A DNA stretch of 21,436 nt from Selaginella moellendorffii (lineage: Eukaryota; Plantae; Lycopodiophyta). Positions 1 through 20,454 of the stretch are shown piece after piece; position 1 is the first letter of the stretch; every line of letters starts with the position of its first letter. A program made the translations under genes and the position numbers. Location of the stretch: positions 1,207,890 through 1,229,325 of the forward strand of contig NW_003314283.1 in NCBI RefSeq assembly GCF_000143415.4, in the 5' to 3' direction. The notes under the pieces are model-generated. The model was not told the DNA's origin. It did not search any database and saw nothing but the letters and a program-made list of their open reading frames with translations.

Positions 1-399
1 AGTCAAAAGTACTTAATAGACTTCTAGTTTGTCTATATCTCAAATTCAGATCTAAAATATTATCATTTAGTCAAAAGTACTTTATATCTTTTAGCTTGTA
101 AGATGTGATTAGAATATGATGATAATATAAATGATTTAGTACCTGATATAAGCAAACAAAGCTTCACTTATATGAGTATCATATTGGACATCTCTAAACC
201 ATGTCATGTCTTGCATAAGAGGAAATTCTCCTAAATCTCCTGAAAATGGTAAATTTCTGTGAGTTCTTTGTCTTTTTTTATCACGTTCTAATTTCTTCCT
301 TGAATACTAATGTAAATACTTCTTGCAAATAAATAAGCTTATAAAAGCTCGTTTACCCTTACCTATAAGCTATAACCTTGTATCATCCTCAAGAAAATA

Positions 400-2100
400 A
401 CATTTCATAACCTTGACTAAGTGTAATAGTAAATATACTTGAGTAGTCATTGCACCTATAAGTAGCTCAGCTTCTTAAGAGATATGTAGTAATTATAACT
501 TTCTGCTTCATTGTTGGGATGAGATTTTCTTTTTTAGTGTGGGACATAACAAACTTCTTGTTAAAAGCTTAAAAATGTAATACTATAATATTAAATTTTC
601 TAAGTCAAAGTATTAATATGTCCATTAGTACTATAGGTAGTATATCCTACATAATTTAAAGTTTTTGAATGATATTAACAAAGTACATATTAATCTTAAA
701 ATATGTAGATAATCATGGCTCTTCATGCCATAAAACTTACCTTTATCTCCAACCACATTGGAGTATACAGTTTCATAACTAATAGGAATTTTAAAGTTTC
801 AAATCCTTTCATCAAGTATAATTTTTTATTCACACCCTCTTTGTTTAAATTAGAAAAAAATATAAAGTTAGTTCTTACCCTCTTTTTTAAAAATTTACCT
901 CACCATGATAATATAGATGTAGTTTAATCTTTGTATGAAAATTAATTCTTAAATTTTGCTCTTTGTCCTTTTAGTCCCTTTTTCTAGTGAGAAAATTGTA
1001 AATTATCTGAACAACATTTTTAAAAATATGAATTTAGTCACAATTAATGTTTCCAATAGATTGAAACATAAAACCCAACTAATATCAACCTGCTCAATTC
1101 CCAAAGCTTTCACAACTTCCACCCAAAAACTTTCTGTGATTTTAGTAGGTGGAATTTCATTCTCTTCAAATCCATTAAATAGCTTATAATCATCATCTTA
1201 TAAACTCAAAAAATATTAAACTATAAAAGTTTTACTTATGTTTTATACTCCCTTCTATATGGATTATTAAGGTCATCCAAGAATTTTCTGTGGTCAAGTT
1301 ACACGTGCTTTTTGGGTTTCATAAACAATCCCCTATATAAACTGATGCCCATAGTCAAGGCAAAAATAATTTCACTTAAAGTTGATAAATCTATAAAAGT
1401 ACAATATTGGAAAGTCACGTATAGTCCACAGAAGTATTAATTGTCCTTTGGCTAACTCATATCAACACAAGACACACTATTCCACAATATTTTAAAATCT
1501 AGAATCAAGTGAAAGAAAATATTAGGTCTTTTTTTTGAAATAAATAAAGAGTAAAACATGAATTAAAAATACCTGAAAGTATTGTTGCCATAAAAAATAA
1601 TACCCCTCCTCAACTGCCTATAAAACCAACTTTGATACTCCTTATTATGATAATCTATAATACTTTCATGAATTTTATTAGATACACACCATCTGCAACA
1701 AATGATAAGAACCTATTATCTATCCAACTTATCACAAGCTTTGCAATTTCCTTACTGTTATACCCTTAAATTGATAGGAAAATAAAAAATGACTTTTTAG
1801 GGCACCTCAAAAGTAACATCTTGCTTGTATTGTAACTTATTATACTCAAGACACCTTAACTTGTTACAATTGTCACTTCGGAACAAAATGCAATTGTTAA
1901 CACATGTATATTTTGTTGCACTTCAATATATTACCTTTTTTCCATTTTCTTGTAAGGTGGTGGAAATTTTGTTTTCATTTGATATTATTTTATGAAGCAT
2001 CTACAAAATAAACTTAGAATAATTTATAAATATTTACAAATCTTATAATAACCTCAATTTGATTCTTGAATATATAGAAGTGTTAATAAAGAACAAATCA
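400..2100 (-). mobile_element. Decayed CACTA (En/Spm) Tnp2-type transposase remnant
   Basis: Manual minus-strand translation gives Tnp2 motifs in the expected order, with stops and frameshifts: TCVNNCILFR..C (~1910-1850, cf. HACPNDCILY), VADG (~1695), LLWTIRDFP (~1435-1410, cf. LLWTINDFP), DHRKFL..NPYR (~1295-1255), FYGMKSHDYLHIL (~736-698, cf. GLKSHDCH), MTTQVYLLLHLV (~452-417). No TIR found; boundaries approximate. Confidence 0.85.
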
Positions 2101-2942
2101 CTGATATCTTTACTTCTCAAACTATAAAAATATTTTTAAAACTGAAAAGTAATGTAAAATAAACTTGAGTAAATTTACTTCATTAGCATGCAACCATGAA
2201 TGAAAATAGTCATGAACCTCATTAAGCTTAGATTATCTTGTTTTTCCAAGATGTTTTATTATTGTGGCTCTTTTTGCATATGAATATGTGAACTTGGTCC
2301 AAAAATTAAAAAAACATAAAAAGGTATAAACTTTAAAGGGGCATTTTGATATAACTTATATATTCGACAATTGTGGTATACCATCGTCTTCACATTTGCT
2401 TCACTTTAAGCGAGTAGTAACCTGCTAGTTTCCAGCAAGAGCCACAAGATAATTCTTTGTTGCATGGGTTATAAGATCCCATAAGGAGGATTGAGAGTGA
2501 CGGCAATGAAAAGTGGTGTTGAGGAGACTCTTCACAAGCTTTTTTGTTCCCTTAGCTACTGCTATTGTCTCCTTAGTCACACATTCCAGGATTCACTGTT
2601 GGTTAGCCATTGATGCTATGAATCTAGGTGAAGAGGAAAAAGATTTAAAATTTTGCAAGAAAGAATGGATTTTAGATTACCTTTTACCCAAAAGCATCTA
2701 GTGTACAAGGAGTTATGTTGAGGCCAGGGAAGTGGCTTCTTCCTTGAATGTTGGTAGCTAGCAAAGATGCTCCCTTTCTTGGTGAAATTGGAGAGATTGG
2801 AACCACAAAGAAACCTATGAGAGATAGTATTGATTGCTTGGCTTGACTACAATAAAACCTAAAATGTGAAGTTGAAGCATAGTTAAAGCATAGGATGTAT
2901 GTAGAAGTGAAGGGAGGAAATAAAAGAGAAGGTTCTTGGATC

Positions 2943-3323
2943 ACCTCTGCCAGTCAAGTGCAAATGCTCTTCCTGTTTGGCGACTCAATCTTCGACACCA
3001 GCAACAACAACTTCCTGCCTGGCTTGCTGGCGGTGGCCAACGTCATGCCTTACAGGACGACGTCCTTTGGAGTGCCAACAGGAAGGTTTAGTGATGGCAG
3101 GCTGATAGCAGACTTCATCGCCGAGTTCCTGGGACTACCATACATTCCACCCTTCATGTAGCCGGGGGTGAGCTTCATCCACGGTGCAAACTTTGCGTTG
3201 GCTAGCAGCAGCCTGCTCAATGCCACCGACACACCGCTCGGGGTCCTCTCGCTCTACGCACAGATGGACCAGTTCCAGTACCTCTCGACCGTCATGCGGC
3301 AGCAAAATGGCGACTGCCACGAG
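2943..3323 (+). pseudogene. GDSL esterase/lipase N-terminal fragment (pseudogene)
   Basis: Reads LFLFGDSIFD..NNN ... [39 protein letters not shown]. In-frame TAG at 3159-3161. No signal peptide and no C-terminal half. Sharp GC-rich island in AT-rich DNA. Confidence 0.92.
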
Positions 3324-3388
3324 TTTTAGTCTAAAGTTTAAATAAAAAAATGTAGTAATATATATGTACTTATAAGGTCTGTAAATGC

Positions 3389-3401
3389 ATATATATATAT
3401 A

Positions 3402-3432
<31 letters not shown>

Positions 3433-3444
3433 GTGTGTATGTAT
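3389..3444. repeat. Compound microsatellite (AT)n/(TATATG)n/(TG)n
   Basis: Directly visible in the sequence. Confidence 0.9.
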
Positions 3445-4170
3445 TTACCCTATTTTTAAGCAGTGGTCTAAACCCTCATTAATATACTTATTTCTGAACA
3501 CTCATATTAATAGAGCTGAAAGGCACTTCAATTCATCCCTAGAGTTTTTTTGTAATGCTTTACTTAGTGTTTGGGATTTTGTTTTTGTTCTTATTCCTTC
3601 ATTCTCTTTCATATTTAAGTTTGAGTTTGGATTTCTCTAGATCTAGAATTGTAACTATTAAATATATTCTTCCTTTTTCAATCTCCATTGCATTTTCTTC
3701 TTTCATATGCTCAAGAGTTTGGCTCTATCCCCTTATTTAATGGCTTAAGACTTTGAAACTCTAGTTTTATTCCACTGCCTTTGGCCTATATGTTTAAAGG
3801 TTAAAGTTCTATTATGTGGTTATTTTATGATAATCATTATAAAGTAGAGGGTGAAAACTATATATATTATATATTCCAATTATTTGTGTGTTGCTATTTT
3901 CAACTCCTATGGGATGTGATTACATGGCTTATTTGTTCTTGGTATCCTACCATCTTTTATTGATGTAAAGTGTAATGATTGGAGAGCTATAGATGATGTG
4001 ATATAACTTTTAGAGAATGTTTAAAGATCATGTTTATAAGAAGATAATGTGTATAAGCTTGAGTGGGTTTCTGATATTGATGAGGAATTTAATTATCAAG
4101 AACAGAGTGCTTTTGTGTTTTTGGCCATATCTGGATCTTCTCTCATTCTTGGAGCTTCTCCATCGTGCAG

Positions 4171-4483
4171 CAAGTTCCTGCCAATGACTAGAAAGATTTC
4201 TATGTGGGGACTTTCAACGGGACGATTCACATAGTTGCGGGAGGCGGCGAGCCAGTTCCCGGAGAGCAGGCCATCGTGGAGCTTGAATCAGGACTGCGAC
4301 TTTAGCTACACCAAGCTCACCTCGTTCAATCGCTCGTCGCTGCTGTTCGAGTACAAGAAGAGCCGCGATGGCGAAGTCTATGACCGGTTTTGGGTCCACA
4401 GGGAGTACAAGGACGTCCTGGGCTGCGACTCTCTCAACATGTTTTGCCCCCTGGTTGCCTCCGCCGAGAACTATCCAGCATAG
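4171..4483 (+). pseudogene. Orphan last exon of a purple acid phosphatase (PAP1/PAP24/PAP27-like nucleotide pyrophosphatase/phosphodiesterase group)
   Basis: After acceptor tgcag (4170): ...*KDFYVGTFNGTIHIVAGGG, then a frameshift to SQFPESRPSWSLNQDCDFSYTKLTSFNRSSLLFEYKKSRDGEVYDRFWVHREYKDVLGCD. This matches the recalled PAP C-terminus GTIHVVVGG..SLLFEYKKS..G.V.D.F...R.Y.DVLAC. One premature stop, one frameshift, upstream exons absent. Confidence 0.85.
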
Positions 4484-4659
4484 CGATCACGATCATCCAG
4501 TGACCATCTTCACGATCTTCCTGACTGACAACCAAATTTTTGTGTTCTGCCAATTTTTTTTTTTTTTTTTTTGAAACTGGATTTGGGTGGTGCGAGGCTA
4601 ACTTTCGTAACTGTTTGATTTTCTTTTTCCCGGGAAGAGGGGAAAAAAAGCGAAGGGCG

Positions 4660-5347
4660 ATGAGGATTGTTCCAAATCGATCCGCTGGGGAGGAGAAGCT
4701 CACCTCTCCCTCGGCCGTGACCGAGAAGTGCCTCATGAGCATGAAGAAGACGGACTTGATTCGATGGCTCCAGCAACACAAGGTGGAATTGCCTCCAAAG
4801 GTAGCGTAAATCTCTCCCTCGCTCTTGTCCTCCTCTTCTTTTTTCTAGAATCCACTCCAAGCTTTCAAATCCTTCCTCTTTCGTCAAGCAGTGAGATTCA
4901 ATCGATGTACGATCCCACATTGCCATGTCTAACTTGCAGAACCAGCTCAAGGAGTACTATCTGGGCATGGCTCTGCAAAAACACGCAGAGCTCGGAGGAG
5001 GCCACCGGCATGTCCAAGTCGCCACCAGACGCCACCCAAGCCAGCTCCCGAGAGGAAAAGGGTAAGAAGAGAAAACCTTGACACATTGTTTGCATAACGA
5101 AAGAAACTTGTAGAGAGGGAGGCCGAGGCGAAGATCCAAGTCGCCTCATCCTTCCCGGTCCTCCCACCTAAGGCGGTTGCGATCCTATCTCCCGGGGAGG
5201 CCGCTGTTGGGATTTCTAGGCGTGGGGCTCAGCAGGAGAAAGCTGCTGAGATTCATCTTTGTGGCCGCGATTGTGTTTGGTGTGCTTGGTTACGCGTACC
5301 AGGTGAGGAGATTCCAAAGGAGGAGGAAATGGTGCTGGCAAAGATGA
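4660..5347 (+). CDS. Putative 3-exon gene (4660-4800, 4940-5061, 5114/5116-5347): LEM-like/HeH domain, basic SR-rich linker and C-terminal TM helix; possibly frameshifted
   Basis: ATG at 4660; GT-AG introns 4801-4939 and 5062-5113. Spliced exon 1-2 gives MKKTDLIRWLQQHKVELPPK|NQLKEYYLGMALQKH. Exon 3 gives RGRPRRRSKSP...LLRFIFVAAIVFGVLGYAYQVRRFQRRRKWCWQR*. The frame closes only with a weak acceptor 2 nt downstream (exon start 5116) or with a 1-nt indel in exon 2. Confidence 0.6.
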
Positions 5348-5680
5348 CTATATTGTTTAATGTTCTGGCATTAAAGAAAACAAGATTGATTAGAAAAAGA
5401 TATTTTAGATCTTAATTCTTATATAAGGAGATTAGACAACATGTGTAAGCGCGGAGGACGACCAAACATAAACAAACACAGTGTATAAGACCATGTCAAA
5501 GTCATTGAAAAGTGTGGACTCCATGCAATTAAGGCAGCCAAATTTGACAGTGATATGGTCAGAGGAGAAGAGTTCTCCTCAAAATTGCCATGCAAACGTA
5601 GAGAAGACAAAAGAAAAATGTAGGCTCACTTCACTGAAATTCTCCCTTGCGTGTTGTATAGTAGCATCCCAATTGCTCAG

Positions 5681-5687
5681 TATAAAA
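5681..5687 (+). promoter_or_regulatory. TATA box of the germin-like gene
   Basis: TATAAAA 150 nt upstream of the ATG at 5831, followed by a CT/CA-rich leader. Confidence 0.6.
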
Positions 5688-5830
5688 GCCCATCCCCTCA
5701 CCACAATTTTCATTCATTCTTCCAATTTCATTCATCCATCCTCATATCATTTGATCTCGTCCCAATTGTTCCAGAGCTTATCGAGCTTGCTTTGAGAATC
5801 CTCGTTCCAGAGAGCTCGAGTTTTAGATCC

Positions 5831-6490
5831 ATGGCCATGGCGCCCGCTTCGTCAATCCTGCTTCTGAGCACCATGATCATCGCATTCTTGGCCAGCGCAG
5901 TGCTCTCCGACCCAGATCCACTCCAAGACTTTTGCGTCGCGGATCTCACCGCATCACCGGGCGTCAATGGCTTCCCATGCAGGAACGCGTCCAGCGTCAC
6001 GGTGGAGGACTTCATCTACAGAGAAATGGTGAATCCGGCCAACATCACCGCCATGAATCGCGCGGGCGCAGTGTTTGGAACCGTGCTGAGGTTCCCCGGG
6101 ATCAACACCCTTGGCCTCTCCATGGCCAGGCTCGACTTGCTACCCGAGGGGATTATCGCGCCACACACCCATCCCAGGGCCACGGAGATGGTGTACGTCG
6201 AGGAGGGGAGCGTATACGCCGCCATTGTCACCGCGGACAACCGCTTGTTTGCACAGGTGCTGACCAGAGGCGAGGTGATGGTAATTCCGCGTGGATTGAT
6301 CCACTGGCAGATGAATGTCGGCAGGAACAATGCCAAGATCATTGCTGCGCTCAACTCTCAGCTCGCGGGGACGCAATTTATAGGGAGGTCCATGTTTGGA
6401 TCGAGCCCCCAAGTGCCCGACGAGGTGCTAGAAAAGACCTTTTTTATCGACAACACTACCATCAATCAGGTCCGATCCGTCTTTGCTTGA
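5831..6490 (+). CDS. Germin-like protein (cupin), intact, intronless, 219 aa
   Basis: Signal peptide, DPDPLQDFCVAD, NGFPC, germin box 1 GIIAPHTHPRATE, box 2 GEVMVIPRGLIHWQMN. All four Mn ligands (H,H,E,H) and both Cys are present. Confidence 0.95.
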   Translation: MAMAPASSILLLSTMIIAFLASAVLSDPDPLQDFCVADLTASPGVNGFPCRNASSVTVEDFIYREMVNPANITAMNRAGAVFGTVLRFPGINTLGLSMARLDLLPEGIIAPHTHPRATEMVYVEEGSVYAAIVTADNRLFAQVLTRGEVMVIPRGLIHWQMNVGRNNAKIIAALNSQLAGTQFIGRSMFGSSPQVPDEVLEKTFFIDNTTINQVRSVFA

Positions 6491-8936
6491 TTTAATCTTC
6501 TTTGATCTTCCAAACTGAATGCACATTCAAATTCAATATTGAAAGGTTTAGTTTCTCCTTCTTAATTATTTTTTTAATCTCAAAACTATTTAAGAAGATT
6601 AGCAAGTTTTGTTATATAATTTATTTTTGTTATTTTGCTCATAAAATTCATATCCAAAAGCTTTTAATTGGTTTGAGTTTTTTCAATATTAATGTTTATT
6701 ACCCTTAAAAATTTTTTTTAAAGAGTTCCTACAAGAAATTACTTTTCTCTTTTTAATTAGAATTAAGGATATTATAGATATTTTGATATAATTTTTTATA
6801 AGTTAGAATGGTTTGAAAGGATAAATTATGTGCTATTAATTATTTTTATTATTTCTTTTAAAATTATATTGATGTGAAAAAATCATTCTAAGCCATAATA
6901 GTTTTGATCTGTTATTAATTGTAGAACACTCAAGCACAAATATGTAAACTATTAGGGAGAACAAGAAATTTCAAACCCCAGTGCATTCCATTGATCTCAG
7001 CAAGATCAAATCATCTAGCTTGGACTTGCTAAGCTTTGCAGTCAAAGAAGGTATAAAATGCTTTAATCCATGGTATGACATTTACCTCACATGGCAGTGA
7101 TTATATCTATTTGTAGCAATGTTGGCTAAAGGTGGAGGAGTGCAAGATCATTTGAGCACATCCATCAGTCAATTTGGATTTACAAACATAAACATAATTT
7201 GAATAAACATTAATTTTAAATCAGACCTTGATTATAAGGAAATTAGATTAAAGATAAAATTTAGAGATAATCTAGGAATATTTATTACAAAATAGGTGTA
7301 ATATAGATCCTTAGCACCAGTGAGTAGGATATGACAAGAACACAATGTTTGAAAGAAATTCTTTTCTTATTGCCAGTGTATATAACTAGGTAATATAGGT
7401 TCTTTTATATTATTTTTTCTATCACAGTTTTTAAAAAGATATATTACTGAGATGATACCCTAAAGCATTTTAATTTGACATTGATGTATAAAATCTATAA
7501 AAATGTTTTTTTTGGAGTTTTAAAAGTAGTAATAAAGTATGGTAATGAATGTGTAATTGCACATGGGTGCATCTTTTATTTATATATGTACAGATTTCTT
7601 TTTTTTTTTAATTGCACTTAAAATATTATGCATAAATCAGATTGATTGCTATAATAGTAATCAAAACGGTGCATTATAAAATTTGAATAGGATGTAGACA
7701 AACACTTCATGCATATATGAAACCATGTCCTTTTTGAGTGATTCAATTCAAGTTATGATCCATGAAATTTGACATATACAAAAATGTGCAAAACACAGGC
7801 AAAAGGCAACACTACCTTGATTTTCATTGCCGCACTATTGAAAGTGACAAATACCTCCTTATACTTCCCAAGAACATAGTCTATACCTCAATCATGGCCA
7901 CAACACTTTACTGCTCAAGGTTATACTGTGTTGCTGGCTCGATTGCATCAAGCACACTGCCTAGCAGTAGGATCAAACAATCTTTATCAATTTGTTGATA
8001 ATCTCTTCAAGCACTTATTGTTACTTTAGGATCCTACTCCTTTGGATCAAACCCTTGTTCTTCGTGAAGAACTTGATTGCCATGGCAATGTCAAAGCAAG
8101 TGCTCTAATGTGGCAATGGTGTCACTGAATTGGCATAGCTGGTAGTGGCCAGTGGCCAGTGCGTGGAGGTTCATGGCTAGTGCTCTTTTGGAACAATATT
8201 CGGTTTAACTACACTTCCAATCAGTGGACAAATCAAATTTAAAAAACAAAAAATAAGATGCTAATATGACAAATAAATTGATGTGGTTTAAGAATTCATA
8301 TGTATATATGAACTTGTTTTCATGGTTAATTCTATGACACTACTTCTTAGGGAATGTAAGATAATCAAGAGCATTGTCTCCAATGAAAAATAAGTGAGCA
8401 TCCAGACTTATGTTGCTTTACATTCATACGCATGTGAAATCAACATGCAACACAAAAGTTTTTTTATATTCTTAAGCATTTTAATGTATAAAATTTTATT
8501 TCCAATAGATTCTGTTGAGTAAAAATGTTGGCTGACTAAGAAAAACATAAAAAAGTAATTAAACTAACCTTTGAATACTAATTAAGCCTTTGATATGGCA
8601 GGAGTAGTTAATATGTGATTGCAGGTTTTGGGGGAGAACATGTAGCATGGCAAAAGTTTTGTTATACTGAATATGTTTAACTCATAAAATAATGTTGAAC
8701 ACACCAGTTTTTTTTAAGGTATATATATTTTTGCATGTGTTACAATTTTCTTCAATTGTAGTCTCATATTAATAACCTTAATATAAGTTATAATGCGAAC
8801 CAAGAAGAGACAAAATTAACTTTGAATTCTGCTACAAAACTATAAAGTACTAATCTCCCAAGCACCAATCCATTCCATCTCATTCATTCAATCAAAGCCT
8901 GTGTAATCAGTTCTATCCCTATTGTAGCCAAACAAT

Positions 8937-9256
8937 ATGGCTGTATCGAAAATTATATTCTTCATGTTCTTCACATTAGATCCACTCCAAGACTTTTGCA
9001 TTAGAGACCTAAGCGCCATGATCATCAATGGCTTCCCATGCAGAACTCCTCCAACACCACAAACATGGATCGCTCTGGTGCAATCTTCCTTTTGCACATC
9101 CAAGCCTCAATACCCTGCATTGCTAGGCTCGATTTCCTTTCCGAGGGGATCATCCCCTCCACACACCCATCCCAGAGCCTCAGACATGGTGTACATTAAG
9201 GAGGGGAGTGTCTATGCTGCCATTGTCACTGTGGACAACTGCTTGTTTTCTAGTGT
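8937..9256 (+). pseudogene. Germin-like paralog, frameshifted and truncated by a CACTA insertion
   Basis: DPLQDFCIRDL, INGFPCR, PPHTHPRASDMVYIKEGSVYAAIVTVDNCLFSSV, colinear with the 5831 gene, with internal deletions. Similarity stops exactly at CACTA (9257). TATAAA at 8841. Confidence 0.9.
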
Positions 9257-11880
9257 CACTACTACACAAAAGCATTATATTGAAGTGTTTTTCTAACAAT
9301 TTTTTTGTGTTTTTTGGAACTTTAAGTTGTAATTTTCAACTACTTGCTATCAACTTAAATGTTACTAGAAAATTGGCTTTAGTTACAAATTTTAAGTTGT
9401 AATTTCTGATAACATTTATAGTTACTCAAATTTAAGTTGGAAACTATAGTTGTCCTTTACAACTAAAATATAAATAAAAAATTTTAGTTGTATTTTAAAA
9501 CATATTCTTTAATATTAGATAAGTTCATATATGTTGCTAATTAGAGTTGCAATTGACAACTTTTAACCTGCAACTAAAATGTAAGTTCTTAAGGTTTGTA
9601 GTTGCAAAAGTTTTAGTCACAAATTTCAACAATATTTACAGAAAATAAATTATAGTAATGTACCTACTTTTAACTCATAATTTCCTAACAAAAGGACTTT
9701 GTTTTCTTTCTCAGATCTATATTATGTTTCTTGTTTAGGATTTAGGAATAAAAGTTGCATGTTGGTGTTTAAGATGTAAAGGTAATTATATTCACCTCAT
9801 ACAAATTACTATACATCATATTCATTTTTATAGTAAACATCCTTCAACACCACATAATACATGGTTTCCAGTAGAAGATATTCAAGGGATTAAATTACAT
9901 AGATCTACTACTTCAATAGAATAATTTTTTGAAATTGGTGAAAGTTTTATACTTTCAGATGATTGTGGTATTAATTTGAGTGGTGGTAATGGAGGTGGAA
10001 ATGATAATATTGAGGATGGTAATGTATTTTATTATTTTTCAGAATGGTTACATGGAAATGAAGACAATTTATTACCTATTTATGAAGGGGCTAGTGCTTA
10101 TATTTTTTCAGCTTGTTTAAGTATTCTAAGCTATTATTGGAATATCAAACCAAGCAACAGATCATTTTATAAGGTAATTTTATTTATTATTTAGTATTAA
10201 ATTTTTCATTATTTGGATGAAGGCTCTTCAAACAAATGTTGCCTACAAATAATATTTTTCCAAATAATTATAAGGAATTGGTAAAAATCACTAAACATAG
10301 TGGACTTATCTACAAAAAGATTGATTCATGTATGAATGATTGTATGTTATTAAAGACCTTCAATTTTATCAAGTTTGTAATGCTAATGGCAATAAAGATT
10401 TTAATAATTATATACTTGAGAAAATAGTGAGCTATTTTTTTATTATACCTCGATTTCACAACAATTTCAATGTACAGTAAATAGCACAATACATTACTTA
10501 TCATTTTTATCATTGATCCATTCATGGAATAATGAAAATGCCTACTGATGGTTCAGCTTGGAAAACGTTCAAAGATGATTATCTAGATGTTGCAACAGAT
10601 CCAAGAAATATACATCTTAGTGTAGCTGCAAATAGTCTTTCTACAACAAAATTAATGGCAAAACCATATTCATATTTGGAAATTATTGTAGTCAATAATA
10701 ATATACCACTAACTCTAGCAATTAAGCCTTTATTTATATTTCCTATTATGATTATACTAAGTATTAGTTAAAAATAAAATAAAATAACTATATTTATAAT
10801 TTTTCTAGGTCCAAAACCTAATATTTATTGGTAATTATTTATGGAAGAGTTAAAAAAATTATGGGATGGAGTGCTATGCAAAAATAATTTTAAGCTAGAG
10901 GGTCAATATTTTTTCAAGTTTAGAATAGCAGTGCAATGGTTTATTCATGATTTTTTGGATTTCTTAGATTATGATCACGAAATTTACATAAATGCATAAT
11001 TATTGGTCATCAGTGTTTTCTACCTATAGATCATCCATTTAAGTCTACTAATAGAAGGTAAGATTTTAATTATTATTTTTAAAAATTAAATTAACCTATA
11101 ATTTTAATTAGTTTATTTAATGGTAATAATTGTATTTGACTAATACTAGGATAGATAACTCCAGAACAATGGGAAATATATTTATATTTGGTTAGACACG
11201 AAGATCAAATATCATTACCTAATGATAAAAAATGGTTATCCATATTCTATCAGTTTTTATATTTTTATAAGTTGCAAGTAATATTCTTAAAGGATTACGT
11301 ATATATATTTAAAAATATTTCTGAAACTATATATAAAACTATTACTGGTAAGAATGATGGATTAAATACTAAAAAGGACTTAGTTGCATGCAGAATGAAG
11401 TAAAATATGTGGCCACGACATGATGGAAACTTTGATCATGGGACTTGGTTATTAATAAATCATTAAAATAAATTGTTTATTAATAATATAAAGGCTTTTA
11501 AAATGCCTACAACATATGGAACTCATTTTCAAATTATGTGGATGAGAAAGGTAATTTAACTGGTATAAAATTCATGATTGGCTTTATTTACTACAAGTAA
11601 ATTTCTATATTTACTATTACATAAATTAATATTTTTAAAAGGATTTTTATTCCATTTTTATAATGGGAAACACAACACCTCAATTACGGAAAGTAATATA
11701 TTTGCTTGGAGAAGTTACAAGGTACTAATTGATTTAATTTTTTTGAATTCAATTAAGTTTAATTTTAATTAGCTTTTTAACTGCTCAAGAAGTAGATAAA
11801 TTTTTAATACCTATTATGCAAGAAAGATTTATCATATATGTATATTTATTAGGAGCAACTATTGTTTTTCTAAAACTAGT
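9257..11880 (+). mobile_element. CACTA DNA transposon (5' TIR, subterminal repeats, decayed Tnp2); 3' end not found
   Basis: Starts CACTACTACACAAAA. Many direct and inverted AGTTG(T/C)AA / CAACT motifs at ~9320-9630. Tnp2 motifs LPTNNIFP, YKKIDSCMNDCML, PTDGSAWK..DPRNIHL, EELKKLWDGV, WFIHDF, GHQCFLPIDHPF, KNISETI, GNLTGIK/HDWL with short introns. Confidence 0.9.
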
Positions 11881-13980: not shown

Positions 13981-14320
13981 ACCCTTCCTCTCGGAATAAT
14001 AAAAGACCATTAGGGTTCTCTTGTAGATGGGCCGGGATCTAGAGGACCGTAAGAAGGAGGCATCAGCGGATCTATAGGTGGTATTAGTTGTTCTTGATCC
14101 TTTTGTATGAAGCGTTTCAACCGTTGCATATGCACAATTTCTGGAGGATTGGCCTGGTGGACATCATGCCAAACGTCATAAACTTGGGGTTCAACTTGCC
14201 GCAACACCTAATATGGTCCTTTCCACTGAGCAAGAAACCCCTTAGATAAACCACGTACCATAAGATGGGGAAAACGGACTAACACTAAATCATCCACTTT
14301 GTACTTCGCATGTGGATGAT

Positions 14321-15386
14321 TGTAGCGCATGTGATCATGGGATGAGATTTGGATATACTGTCACCGTGGATCCTTGAAACCTTGGGGGATAAATGGGGAT
14401 AAAATAGCCACTAAGGGCTCTCTCATCAAGCAATTGCCCCTTTTCCAGTTGGCTTAAGGGGAGAGAGATAAAGTGTGCTACAGTTGGTATCGGAGCAAAT
14501 GGCACGGGTTCGATTCCCATTGATTAGTGGCTACTTCAAAAAATATAATATACCCTTGAGCAAGGTATATTCCTACCCCTAAATTTGAAATCGTATGTAT
14601 TGGGCATCCATGCGTACGTTCTTCCTCTTGTGTGGAGTATCCACGGACGAAGGTATCCACCGTGGGATTGCGGTACGGGTGGATGACTAGTTGCCTCACA
14701 TGGAATAACTAATCTACACAATGGAAGGATTGGTAGATTGAGTGCGGAAATGGAGGTGCTGGTTCCCCTTGGCTCAGTAGGGGTTGTTAGTCAATAGTCC
14801 TCATTCGTGGGATTGCGGTACAGGTGGATGACTAGTTGCCTCACATGGAATAACTAATCTACACAATGGAAGGATTGGTAGGTGCTGGTTCCCCTTGGCT
14901 CAGTAGGGGTTGTTAGTCAATAGTCCTCATTCGTGGGATTGCGGTACGGGTGGATGACTAGTTGCCTCACATGGAATAACTAATCTACACAATGGAAGGA
15001 TTGGTAGATTAAGTGCGGAAATGGAGGTGCTGGTATAACTAATCTACACAATGGAAGGATTGGTAGATTAAGTGCGGAAATGGAGGTGCTGGTATAACTA
15101 ATCTACACAATGGAAGGATTGGTAGATTGAGTGCGGAAATGGAGGTGCTGGTTCCCCTTGGCTCAGTAGGGGTTGTTAGTCAATAGTCAATGAGGACATT
15201 GACATCTCTGAAGGGGGGGGTGAGTGTAGCGCATGTGATCATGGGATGAGATTTGGATATACTGTCACCGTGGATCCTTGGAACCTTGGGGGATAAATGG
15301 GGATAAAATAGCCACTAAGGGCTCTCTCATCAAGCAATTGCCCCTTTTCCAGTTGGCTTAAGGGGAGAGAGATAAGGTGCACTACA
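14321..15386 (+). mobile_element. TRIM-like non-autonomous unit with two 162-bp LTRs (14321-14482, 15225-15386)
   Basis: LTRs are TG..CA with 4 differences by eye. tRNA-iMet PBS TGGTATCGGAGC at 14485-14496. PPT GAAGGGGGGGGTGAG at 15210-15224. Non-coding interior. Second PBS at 15389-15400. Confidence 0.9.
14661..15188. repeat. Nested tandem repeat inside the TRIM
   Basis: 145-bp unit (14661-14805), a copy with a 19-bp deletion (14806-14931), and a third copy containing a triplicated 59-bp subunit (starts 14976, 15035, 15094). Confidence 0.95.
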
Positions 15387-15899
15387 GTTGGTATCGGAGC
15401 AAATGGCACGGGTTCGATTCCCATTAGCATTGAAGTTAGTTCATGTGAGATTCGTGATCATTGCTAGGCATGACTTGGCTATAGACTTCTTCGAGCTTTT
15501 GGTTCTTTGAGTTTTCATGCTCATTGTTCCATTTGTTAGGAGTTGTTGGGGGAAGGCATTTTGGCTCATTAGCTTCGATGTTGACGTTAGTATTTGCATC
15601 TAGCAATCATTGGTGATGATTGACTATCATCTAAGATAGTTGATTATCCTTGTCCAGGGTTTTGCTTGATTATTGTTGGTATAGAATGATTTGCTGTTCT
15701 TCAGGATAGTAGATTATTTCTTCGATGATGATTATGCATTTCTCTATTGATAGGATGATTAATGATCTTTTATGGTGGTTAGTTGTTCTCTTTGATGGCT
15801 TGTGGCTTTTCGCAATATCACATGTTCTTTGTGATTTGCTTTGGATTGGTCTCTTGGGTTTGAGACATCAGTAAGAAGTTGCTGACACTTGCTTAGGCA

Positions 15900-18056: not shown

Positions 18057-20454
18057 ATGATGATAGGAGTTGTAACATCATTGTTGTTTTACTTGTATGC
18101 AGCCTAAGTGTTCAGCAGATTTTGCCCCAACAAGTGGAAGAATGCTCATCAAATACTGATTCCACAATGTAGTATCGGTAGCTTGTGGCAATTACGAAGG
18201 TAAACTCAACTCTATTGGTAATATTGGATCATGACTATATAAAAGTTTATATAGTGAAACATTAATAGAACTTTGCACCTCTGTGACATATGCATACTGA
18301 AAAGATGGTAAATAACCATCTCAATCTGAATGCTAAAAGTTCACGTACTTTGCGATCATTCCTTTGAATGTCCAAATGAGCCGTTCCACCAAACTATCTG
18401 ACTATGGATGATAATCACTCGTGAAAATGTGGCATATCCCCAACCGAGATGTCAAAACATGAAATGCCTCAAACATAAATATGGGACTATTATCCAAAAG
18501 AATTCGCTCCAAACAAGAATTCTGGAACACCACTTGATTGAGAAGGAAGTATTTAATATCAATTGCAGAGGTGCTAGCAAAAGCACCAACTTCCACTTAA
18601 CGAATCAAATAGTCAGAAGCAATAATAACATATTCATTGCCAACAGTCGATCGTGGAAAAGGTCTTATAAAGTTAAATGCTACTAATTCAAACAAACAGA
18701 AAACTTCAATTGACTCCAATTGTCCTTCCACGGCACGAGGGGGAGTATTACGAGCTTAGCACCAAATGCAGCTATACACATACTGGATAACATCATGTCA
18801 TATCTCCAGCTAATAACTTGTGCAACTTCTCGATCACACGACAATGTCCTATATGCTTGCCTAGAATAGAAGAATTATGGTAGGTATGGAGAAATTGTGG
18901 AATAAAGACAAAAAGCACCACCAACTGTAAAGGATCATCAGGATCTGTCCCCACAAAATAAAGAAGGCCATTTTCAAGGTGATATTGAGAATATAAATGT
19001 CGAAATAACAAATCATCAACAAGTGATGTAGGATTTTCAAACCCATCTCGAAGCCTTCGAATCTATGGCTCAAGCTTTTGAGCCTCGCGAACCTTATCAG
19101 GAGAAGATAGATCTTGCTCTGCACCTTGTAGACACTGACTATCAAGTACAACAACTGCCGACAGCAAAGAATCCTCATCTAGAAAATCCACAGATGCTGG
19201 AATAACAAGCTCATCAGAAACATGAGAAGAGAGTGGAGAAGGAAGAAGAGCTCGAGAAAGGGCATTAGCATCAGCCATAAAACTCCTTAGGTAATGAACA
19301 ACATTAAAATCATATATTTGAAGCTTCAAAGCCCACTAAGCAATACGACCAACCAAGTTCTTTCACTTCAATAATGAAGTAATGGCAGCATGATCACTTT
19401 CAAGTAACGTCCAAGAACCATGTAGATATGCATGAAGTTTCTTGAAACCCCAAACTACTATTAAACATTCCTTCTCTATCATGGAGTAGTTCACCTCCAC
19501 TGGTTGTAATGTATGGCTTATATACGCAATGGGATGGCGCTGACCAAGCATACTTAGGCTCTCTTGTATCAACACATCTCCAAGACCAATATCAAAAGCA
19601 TCCATGCGCAAAATAAAAAGGTCAAGTATAGTTAGGATATGCTAAAATCGGAGGAGTCGTCAATAGCTCTTTGAGATCCACGAATGTCTGCTCACAAGCT
19701 GAAGACCAAATAAATGACTTCAACAATGCCCACAATGGTGCAGTGCGATCAGAAAGATGATCCACAAAATGATCGAGAGAGTGCACCTTGCCCAAGAAGC
19801 ACTGCACATCAGTCATATACTTTGGAGTAGGGAACTTTAGAACAACCACAAGTTTGTCAAAATCAACTTGCAAACCCTCACGAGAAATATAATACCTAAG
19901 ATAAGTTGTGTCTTTGGACTCAAATACGCACTTTGACCACTTCAGCTTTAAACCAACATCCCATAGCCAATCTAACACTTTACAAACATCACAAACATGC
20001 TCCTCCCATGTCCTCTTTAAGTGAATCAAGATATCATTAATGAAGTCAACAATCACCTCCGACATATTGCAAAGAACCTCGTCCATCATCCGCTAGAAAA
20101 TTTCTGGAGCATTGTTCAAACCAAACAGCATTATCAAGAACTTATACAAACCAAATGATGTACAAAAAGCAGTGTTAGGAATATCTTCTTTGACCATCAG
20201 TACTTATTAGTACCTAGAAGTAAAATCTAGCTTGGTGAACTAACAACTTCGCCCCAAACGATCCAAAAGATCAGCAGTGTGAAGAAGAGGGTACATATTT
20301 GGGATCGTCACTTTTGTTTAATAGACAATAGTCGATGCAGAAATGAATACTCCCATCAGACTTTGTCACAAGATGAGGTTCACATGCCTAAGGACTTCGT
20401 GACTTCCAAATAATACCCTTCTCCTGTAAGCAACTAATTTTTCCATTCTACTTT

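Follow-up and report, generated by a model that had tools for sequence, protein, structure and literature searches.

In this study we discuss a small spliced gene at positions 4660-5347 of a stretch of 21,436 nucleotides (nt) from the Selaginella moellendorffii genome (contig NW_003314283.1, positions 1,207,890 to 1,229,325 of the forward strand; the whole stretch is called the window below). A sequence-only reading had proposed that this gene encodes a LAP2/emerin-like inner-nuclear-membrane protein, with a LEM-like domain, an AT-hook-like motif and a tail anchor, retained in an early-diverging land plant lineage; the lineage at least is right, as the source is a lycophyte. On the whole, our analysis leads us to favour, tentatively, a real but lineage-restricted small gene, whose intact allele of 150 amino acids (aa) would be a tail-anchored and very basic protein with a SAP/helix-extension-helix (HeH)-like module and one AT-hook. 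The LAP2/emerin-like layout belongs cleanly to this other allele, and in the window it needs a splice that is not annotated.

The candidate gene corresponds to the annotated hypothetical protein SELMODRAFT_414039 of S. moellendorffii (106 aa, EFJ25236.1, UniProt D8RRF6), to the start of which the translation of exon 1 is 100% identical. A second copy, SELMODRAFT_406014 (150 aa, UniProt D8R0D7), to which the candidate exon 1 is 98% identical, lies on another scaffold, GL377569.1. The gene order there is the same as in the window, namely purple acid phosphatase, candidate and germin-like gene, and the locus aligns with window positions 4105-6871 at about 94%. The published assembly, made from a heterozygous plant, includes both haplotypes, and because of this we treat the two copies as alleles. 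In the window the candidate sits between the last exon of the purple acid phosphatase (4235-4483, Metallophos_C) and the germin-like cupin gene (to 6490), with a spacer of only 176 nt from the phosphatase stop to the candidate ATG. This spacer contains a run of 19 T at 4554-4572, where the haplotypes differ, as they also do in a 13-nt indel just after it.

The joining of exons 1 and 2, on which the proposed peptide was built, is confirmed: there is an ATG at 4660, the intron has GT..AG ends, the spliced peptide is exactly the one proposed, and the Joint Genome Institute (JGI) models of both haplotypes share the join. What speaks most strongly for an evolution of the region as coding sequence is its G+C content by codon position. 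For the spliced coding sequence it is 0.55/0.48/0.68 (permutation p 0.00085 allowing any frame), to be compared with 0.54/0.44/0.74 in the germin gene and 0.48/0.42/0.83 in the phosphatase exon; exon 1 has a third-position value of 0.72, similar to the neighbouring genes, while intron 1 and the downstream spacer, taken as controls, are flat. Such evidence bears directly on a rival explanation, according to which the locus is not a functional protein-coding gene, but a construct of the gene predictor or a very young proto-gene in a GC-rich spacer, with features incidental to an R/G/P-rich reading. We regard this explanation as rather unlikely. It is opposed by the G+C periodicity, which occurs in the proposed frame only and as in the real genes on either side, by the canonical splice sites and the polypyrimidine-rich intron, and by the reading frames of exon 1, early exon 2 and exon 3, which are open in both haplotypes; the points in its favour are given further below.

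The two alleles part in exon 2. The alignment of the window with GL377569.1 and the proteins of both alleles show an indel (Table 1) making a net 8-nt frameshifting difference between the haplotypes. With the annotated acceptor (AG 5112-5113, common to both models), the window allele reads ...GKGEGGRGEDPS... up to the stop at 5169-5171, and the annotated product of 106 aa contains no AT-hook, no membrane helix and no hydrophobic stretch at all. In the other haplotype the indel shifts exon 2 to the frame ending in phase 0, and the protein reads ...EKPAPERKR/RGRPRRRSKSP... across the junction (stroke) and on through the membrane helix. The window reaches the frame of linker, helix and tail only via the AG at 5114-5115, with exon 3 starting at 5116 and a product of 164 aa; even so, this acceptor splits the first R codon of RGRP, giving KGGRPRRR instead of KRRGRPRRR. 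The window allele is thus probably truncated or null, unless splicing takes place at the AG lying 2 nt downstream. The C-termini of the two models differ as well: SELMODRAFT_406014 ends ...AYQGD and thus uses the strong donor CAG/GTGAGG at 5302/5303, and the matching acceptor of this third intron lies one base off in the window, owing to a G-to-A difference at 5426. The proposal of a linker, a helix and a basic tail therefore stands as far as all three are encoded, but the reading frame through the annotated splice is not continuous in the window. The other two frames of exon 2 (4940-5081) are also open and linker-like, one of them S/P/K-rich and ending in a basic cluster of KKRKP type, the remaining one R/P-rich and used by the other haplotype after its indel; these open alternative frames may explain how an 8-nt indel was tolerated.

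In the other allele the linker is very basic and R/S/P-rich, and contains a canonical AT-hook core, KRRGRPRRR. The pattern [KR]RGRP[KR] appears in 0.16% of composition-preserving shuffles of this linker (p 0.0016), so that the hook in its context also speaks against a purely incidental origin. The AT-hook motif proposed before is accordingly confirmed in one allele only: the codons for RGRP exist at 5114-5125, and the R-G-R-P core with K/R on its flanks is intact in the other allele, while the annotated window frame misses the codons. KRRGRPRRR also seems to resemble a nuclear localisation signal. Downstream, the hydrophobic helix LLRFIFVAAIVFGVLGYAY starts at 5243 with a Kyte-Doolittle value of 2.05, and is followed, when intron 3 is kept, by the tail VRRFQRRRKWCWQR, in which 7 of 14 residues are basic and which runs to the stop at 5345-5347. 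The helix then lies 14 residues from the C-terminus; once the third intron is removed, 3 residues are left in the other allele and 7 in the window. The layout of a tail anchor is thus seen in SELMODRAFT_406014 and in the alternative-acceptor product of the window, not in the annotated 106-aa product. The same division applies to the claimed LAP2beta/emerin architecture, since the intact allele does combine the module, the basic linker and a single C-terminal helix, but the window allele is broken in frame before the hook and the anchor.

The LEM-like character of the N-terminal module was the central claim of the sequence-only reading, and the profile searches do not support it. Thymopoietin (PF08198) is the only Pfam family matched, with 14.2 bits (E 0.035) for the spliced 56-aa peptide, 13.0 bits (E 0.081) for SELMODRAFT_414039 and 10.5 bits (E 0.52) for SELMODRAFT_406014; all these scores are under half of the curated cut-off of 28.6, and the match covers profile positions 19-42 of 48 only. 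SAP (PF02037), HeH, LEM (PF03020), Rho_N and TPR give no match at E up to 10 with either the spliced peptide or the annotated proteins. When the exons are searched separately, exons 1 and 2 match no Pfam family and exon 3 gives only noise. A sequence search of the PDB with the spliced peptide does not find LAP2, returning noise only (methylglyoxal synthase, CTPR3 and the DC-SIGNR neck).

The ungapped alignment to a LAP2 39-mer, given in the sequence-only reading, is reproduced in its count of 11 identities in 39 positions (BLOSUM62 score 25, shuffle p about 1e-4 with the pairing taken as fixed). The claim that it stands above chance is weak, however, because the TPR repeats of two TPR proteins score 32-38 without gaps on the same 39-mer. 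In addition, VELPPKNQLKEYYLGMALQKH is 35-42% identical to many TPR repeats, at the junction of helix B and helix A in two bacterial-type TPR proteins, and the designed protein CTPR3 is among the top PDB sequence matches. The TPR comparison serves here as a yardstick for chance similarity and not as an assignment. In fact, a TPR assignment was considered and rejected, with only one junction-like unit, no Pfam TPR match, no TPR structure among the fold neighbours, and a loop of 10-11 residues. A short amphipathic helix-loop-helix of this kind matches several unrelated families (LAP2, SAP and TPR) about equally.

The predicted structures give a similar picture. For SELMODRAFT_406014, AlphaFold2 run on the single sequence predicts helices at residues 22-27 and 30-39, a loop of 11 residues (40-50) and a helix at 51-64, with a predicted local distance difference test (pLDDT) of 81-89, and then a disordered linker followed by a helix at 126-147 (pLDDT about 81-91); helices predicted with such confidence from one sequence are a further point against an accidental reading frame. 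A model of the domain only (SELMODRAFT_414039 residues 14-72) has the same topology, with helix pLDDT of 69-78. Foldseek against the PDB finds nothing significant for the full-length model (best E 0.85), although helix-extension-helix domains dominate the top of the list. The neighbours there include YqbF, the MKL1 SAP domain, the C-terminal domains of MANF/CDNF, the Rho N-terminal domain (2a8v, root-mean-square deviation 1.8 A over 45 columns), 3'-exonuclease entries and the emerin LEM domain. The emerin entries have template modelling (TM) scores of 0.64-0.71 on target length at non-significant E of 2.3-4.4, among them 6ghd_G with TM 0.71 and a deviation of 2.1 A. For the domain-only model the nearest structures are SAP domains (3'hExo 1zbh, PIAS1, Tho1, Hcc-1 and DEK), with Rho and MANF also present; 1zbh is matched at E 0.22, probability 0.75 and 28% identity, and the part matched in this and the other 3'-exonuclease entries is, we take it, the SAP domain. 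The LEM-like domain of LAP2 is absent from the top 50 neighbours of both models, and the top 50 of the domain-only model contain no LEM or LEM-like entry of any kind. The helix, extended loop and helix of the sequence-only reading are therefore predicted as expected, but lead to no significant match. Going by these models, a generic SAP/HeH-type fold is plausible for the module; they give no support for placing it in the LEM-like family in particular.

It follows that a true LAP2 LEM-like (HeH) homologue, that is, an ancient inner-nuclear-membrane tether retained in lycophytes, is in our judgement very improbable. Such a homologue would account for PF08198 being the only family matched, for the 11 identities with their low shuffle p, and for the emerin LEM domain among the neighbours of the full-length model. 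It would also agree with the work of Koreny and Field (2016, PMC5630835), who follow LEM-like as well as MSC domains back to the last eukaryotic common ancestor. [quoted passage not shown] Besides the low and partial profile scores, the equal or higher scores of TPR repeats, the missing LAP2 matches and the SAP domains nearest to the domain-only model, this explanation is opposed by the searches for relatives. Word-index searches of an index of 5.8 billion clusters, made with the whole protein and also with exon 1 and the domain each by itself, return the two alleles only, and neither these nor the HMMER protein searches described below find an intermediate homologue in any plant, alga or other eukaryote. 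The claim of retention from an ancestor is thus unsupported, with two Selaginella alleles as the only members found. Because the module matches LAP2, SAP and TPR about equally, the gene is an orphan and the window copy is frame-broken, no secure statement on LEM-like ancestry in plants can be drawn from this locus.

Several observations weigh against the reading that we favour, and a number of them are what the non-gene explanation would expect. An exhaustive HMMER scan of SELMODRAFT_406014 against 1.84 billion cluster representatives recovers only its own allele and three repeat-driven artefacts; the latter, two TPR proteins confirmed by Pfam and one repetitive protein matching the low-complexity linker, were rejected. 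The orphan status in all searches and the lack of any Pfam family above threshold would both suit a region that is not a gene. Over about 485 positions, the candidate exons show 8 differences between haplotypes (4 synonymous and 4 non-synonymous, in exons 1 and 3), apart from the frameshifting indel, and the germin gene shows 9 over 660 nt (5 synonymous and 4 non-synonymous) without gaps. The candidate introns diverge at a rate similar to the exons, and the synonymous excess of the candidate is not significant (p 0.11). On these data purifying selection is neither proven nor excluded, and a frameshift between haplotypes, together with exons no better kept than introns, looks like weak constraint; both facts count for the non-gene explanation, as do the different ends of the two alleles' models. 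Both alleles are singleton clusters whose accessions are the original EFJ and UniRef ones only; they have neither an XP_ accession nor a EukProt source, unlike the adjacent germin, which has a RefSeq XP_ accession and a EukProt record. It would seem from this that the candidate model was dropped from later annotation sets, again as would be expected if it were no gene. A literature search by locus tags, numeric ids and UniProt ids finds no paper mentioning it, the single numeric match being a PubMed id; the gene is already annotated, yet unstudied. The fold evidence is also weak, all the matches to the predicted models being non-significant (E >= 0.22), a two-helix module being easily matched, and the domain-only model reaching a mean pLDDT of only 66.

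The tail raises a difficulty of another kind. Plant tail-anchored proteins with strongly basic tails favour organelle outer membranes over the endoplasmic reticulum (ER) or nuclear envelope, and the strongly basic unspliced tail of the candidate would favour the same destination. One may thus think of a real tail-anchored protein of the mitochondrial or plastid outer membrane (or of the peroxisome), in which the basic linker and tail would act in targeting or RNA binding and no chromatin role would exist. We find this unlikely, more so than the absence of a functional gene. The 7 basic residues of the unspliced tail, a caveat already raised in the sequence-only reading, and the only moderately hydrophobic helix fit such an anchor, whereas the other allele's model splices the tail off and ends in GD, the AT-hook and SAP/HeH-like module are nucleic-acid-binding features, and the basic core of the hook has the look of a nuclear signal noted above.

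If the favoured gene does exist as a protein, its intact allele would begin with a disordered N-terminus, followed by about 40 residues that form the module of helix, extended loop and helix, then a basic R/S/P linker with the AT-hook, and a C-terminal membrane helix. Through the last of these it might be inserted post-translationally as a tail-anchored protein, leaving the basic DNA-binding part exposed to the cytosol or nucleoplasm. It might then diffuse from the ER to the inner nuclear membrane, where the AT-hook, and perhaps also the helix-loop-helix module, could bind AT-rich DNA and so retain it at the envelope. The sequence, the join, the indel, the coding periodicity and the lack of homologues are results in this account, while the fold class, the binding of DNA, the topology in the membrane and the location are inferred. 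In its full form, this idea makes the gene a lycophyte-specific and independently evolved LAP2/emerin layout, acting as a tether of AT-rich chromatin at the inner nuclear membrane and segregating in the sequenced plant with an intact allele beside a frameshifted one; we give it only a slim chance, slightly below that of the organelle anchor. The question has some importance in that plants have no recognised LEM-domain tethers, and the attachment of chromatin to the nuclear envelope in plants is understood only in part. If true, a small protein combining a membrane anchor with an AT-hook and a SAP/HeH-like module would be a candidate tether and a case of convergent evolution of the LAP2/emerin layout. 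The present value of the locus is mostly cautionary, and its interest is modest.

Table 1. Features of the candidate gene and their positions in the window
Feature	Position	Strand	Description and basis
Exon 1	4660..4800	+	47 codons from ATG; predicted to cover the disordered N-terminus, a short helix and helix 1, with the larger part of the long loop; from translation and match to SELMODRAFT_414039
Intron 1	4801..4939	+	139 nt, GT...TTGCAG; spliced here in both annotated alleles; without codon periodicity
Exon 2	4940..5061	+	122 nt, ends in phase 2; helix 2 and start of linker; from translation and annotated allele proteins
Intron 2 as annotated	5062..5113	+	52 nt, GTAAGA...TTGTAG; splice deduced from annotated proteins
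Alternative acceptor AG	5114-5115	+	2 nt downstream of the annotated one, unannotated; exon 3 then from 5116
Exon 3, annotated window allele	5114..5171	+	Out of the AT-hook/helix frame; stop 5169-5171; protein ends ...GKGEGGRGEDPSRLILPGPPT
Exon 3 for the AT-hook/anchor architecture	5116..5347	+	R/S/P-rich basic linker, membrane helix, basic tail, stop 5345-5347; 164-aa model
Helix-loop-helix module	4723..4990	+	Protein residues 22-64, intron 1 inside; predicted by AlphaFold2 from single sequence
R-G-R-P codons (AT-hook core)	5114..5125	+	Same frame as the membrane helix
Hydrophobic helix, candidate tail anchor	5243..5302	+	Best 19-residue Kyte-Doolittle window 2.05
Basic 14-residue tail VRRFQRRRKWCWQR or start of third intron	5303..5347	+	Donor CAG/GTGAGG at 5302/5303
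Haplotype indel	5027..5037		11 nt in the window, 3 nt (GAG) in the other haplotype

Outside the candidate, several other observations were made in the window. The haplotypes are colinear only from 4105 on, with a breakpoint at 4104/4105, and the AT-rich 4.1 kb upstream (1-4104) have no counterpart in the 5.4 kb upstream in the other haplotype, where the body of the phosphatase gene lies. Only the last phosphatase exon (4235-4483) is present in the window; this, together with the non-matching upstream DNA, points therefore to an insertion or rearrangement in or beside the phosphatase gene. The germin-like cupin gene is intact, encoding 217 aa at 5837-6490 (+), with its annotated start two codons after the first ATG. 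About 3 kb downstream of it, a degenerate germin fragment at 8937-9296 (+) shows a weak Cupin_1 match and a 90-nt repeat of 84% identity, and is probably a pseudogene from tandem duplication; the other haplotype has further germin copies. A cluster of direct repeats at 14300-15430, with units of about 59, 126 and 145 nt, two copies of 208 nt that lie 904 nt apart and are 97% identical, and repeated open reading frame fragments on the minus strand, looks like part of a transposable element. An open reading frame at 19622-20089 (-) gives weak reverse-transcriptase and RT-RNaseH matches and is a retrotransposon remnant. Rfam finds no match on the whole window.

Below we compare the candidate with known systems. 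The best fold neighbours of the predicted module are the SAP domains of 3'hExo/ERI1, PIAS1, Tho1, Hcc-1 and DEK and the N-terminal HeH of Rho. Domains of the SAP and Rho_N type occur commonly in plants and are binders of nucleic acid. Unlike the candidate, none of those proteins is tail-anchored, and the candidate has no Pfam SAP, Rho_N or HeH match; what we take to be the conserved glycine of the SAP loop is also replaced in it (LPPK). With HMGA and the plant AHL proteins the other allele shares the R-G-R-P core with basic flanks, but the candidate has a single hook and no PPC/DUF296 (no Pfam match), and membrane anchoring is, to our knowledge, no feature of AHL or HMGA proteins. The plant NEAP proteins are small and plant-specific, with a nuclear localisation signal and a C-terminal inner-nuclear-membrane helix, and they contact chromatin factors. 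Unlike the candidate, which has neither a coiled coil nor relatives, they contain long coiled coils and show conservation throughout the seed plants.

Among the fungal and protist proteins, Heh1/Src1, Heh2, Lem2 and Man1 are located in the inner nuclear membrane, have a DNA-binding HeH/LEM-like module at the N-terminus, and tether chromatin independently of BAF (PMC5630835, PMC6240307). These HeH-MSC proteins are large, with two membrane helices and a C-terminal MSC domain, while the candidate has a single anchor; no MSC/Man1 Pfam match is found in it, and only one hydrophobic helix, so that it does not belong to this group. As to LAP2-beta and emerin themselves, the candidate differs in having no LEM domain, no lamin-binding region and no chain of homology, in its size of about 150-165 aa, and in carrying an AT-hook in place of a second DNA/BAF-binding domain. 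Binding of BAF also defines the LEM domain. What the intact allele does share with LAP2-beta and emerin is the order of its parts, with helix, long loop and helix at the N-terminus, then a basic linker of low complexity, and last one membrane helix at the C-terminus, and this likeness would be one of analogy, not of descent.

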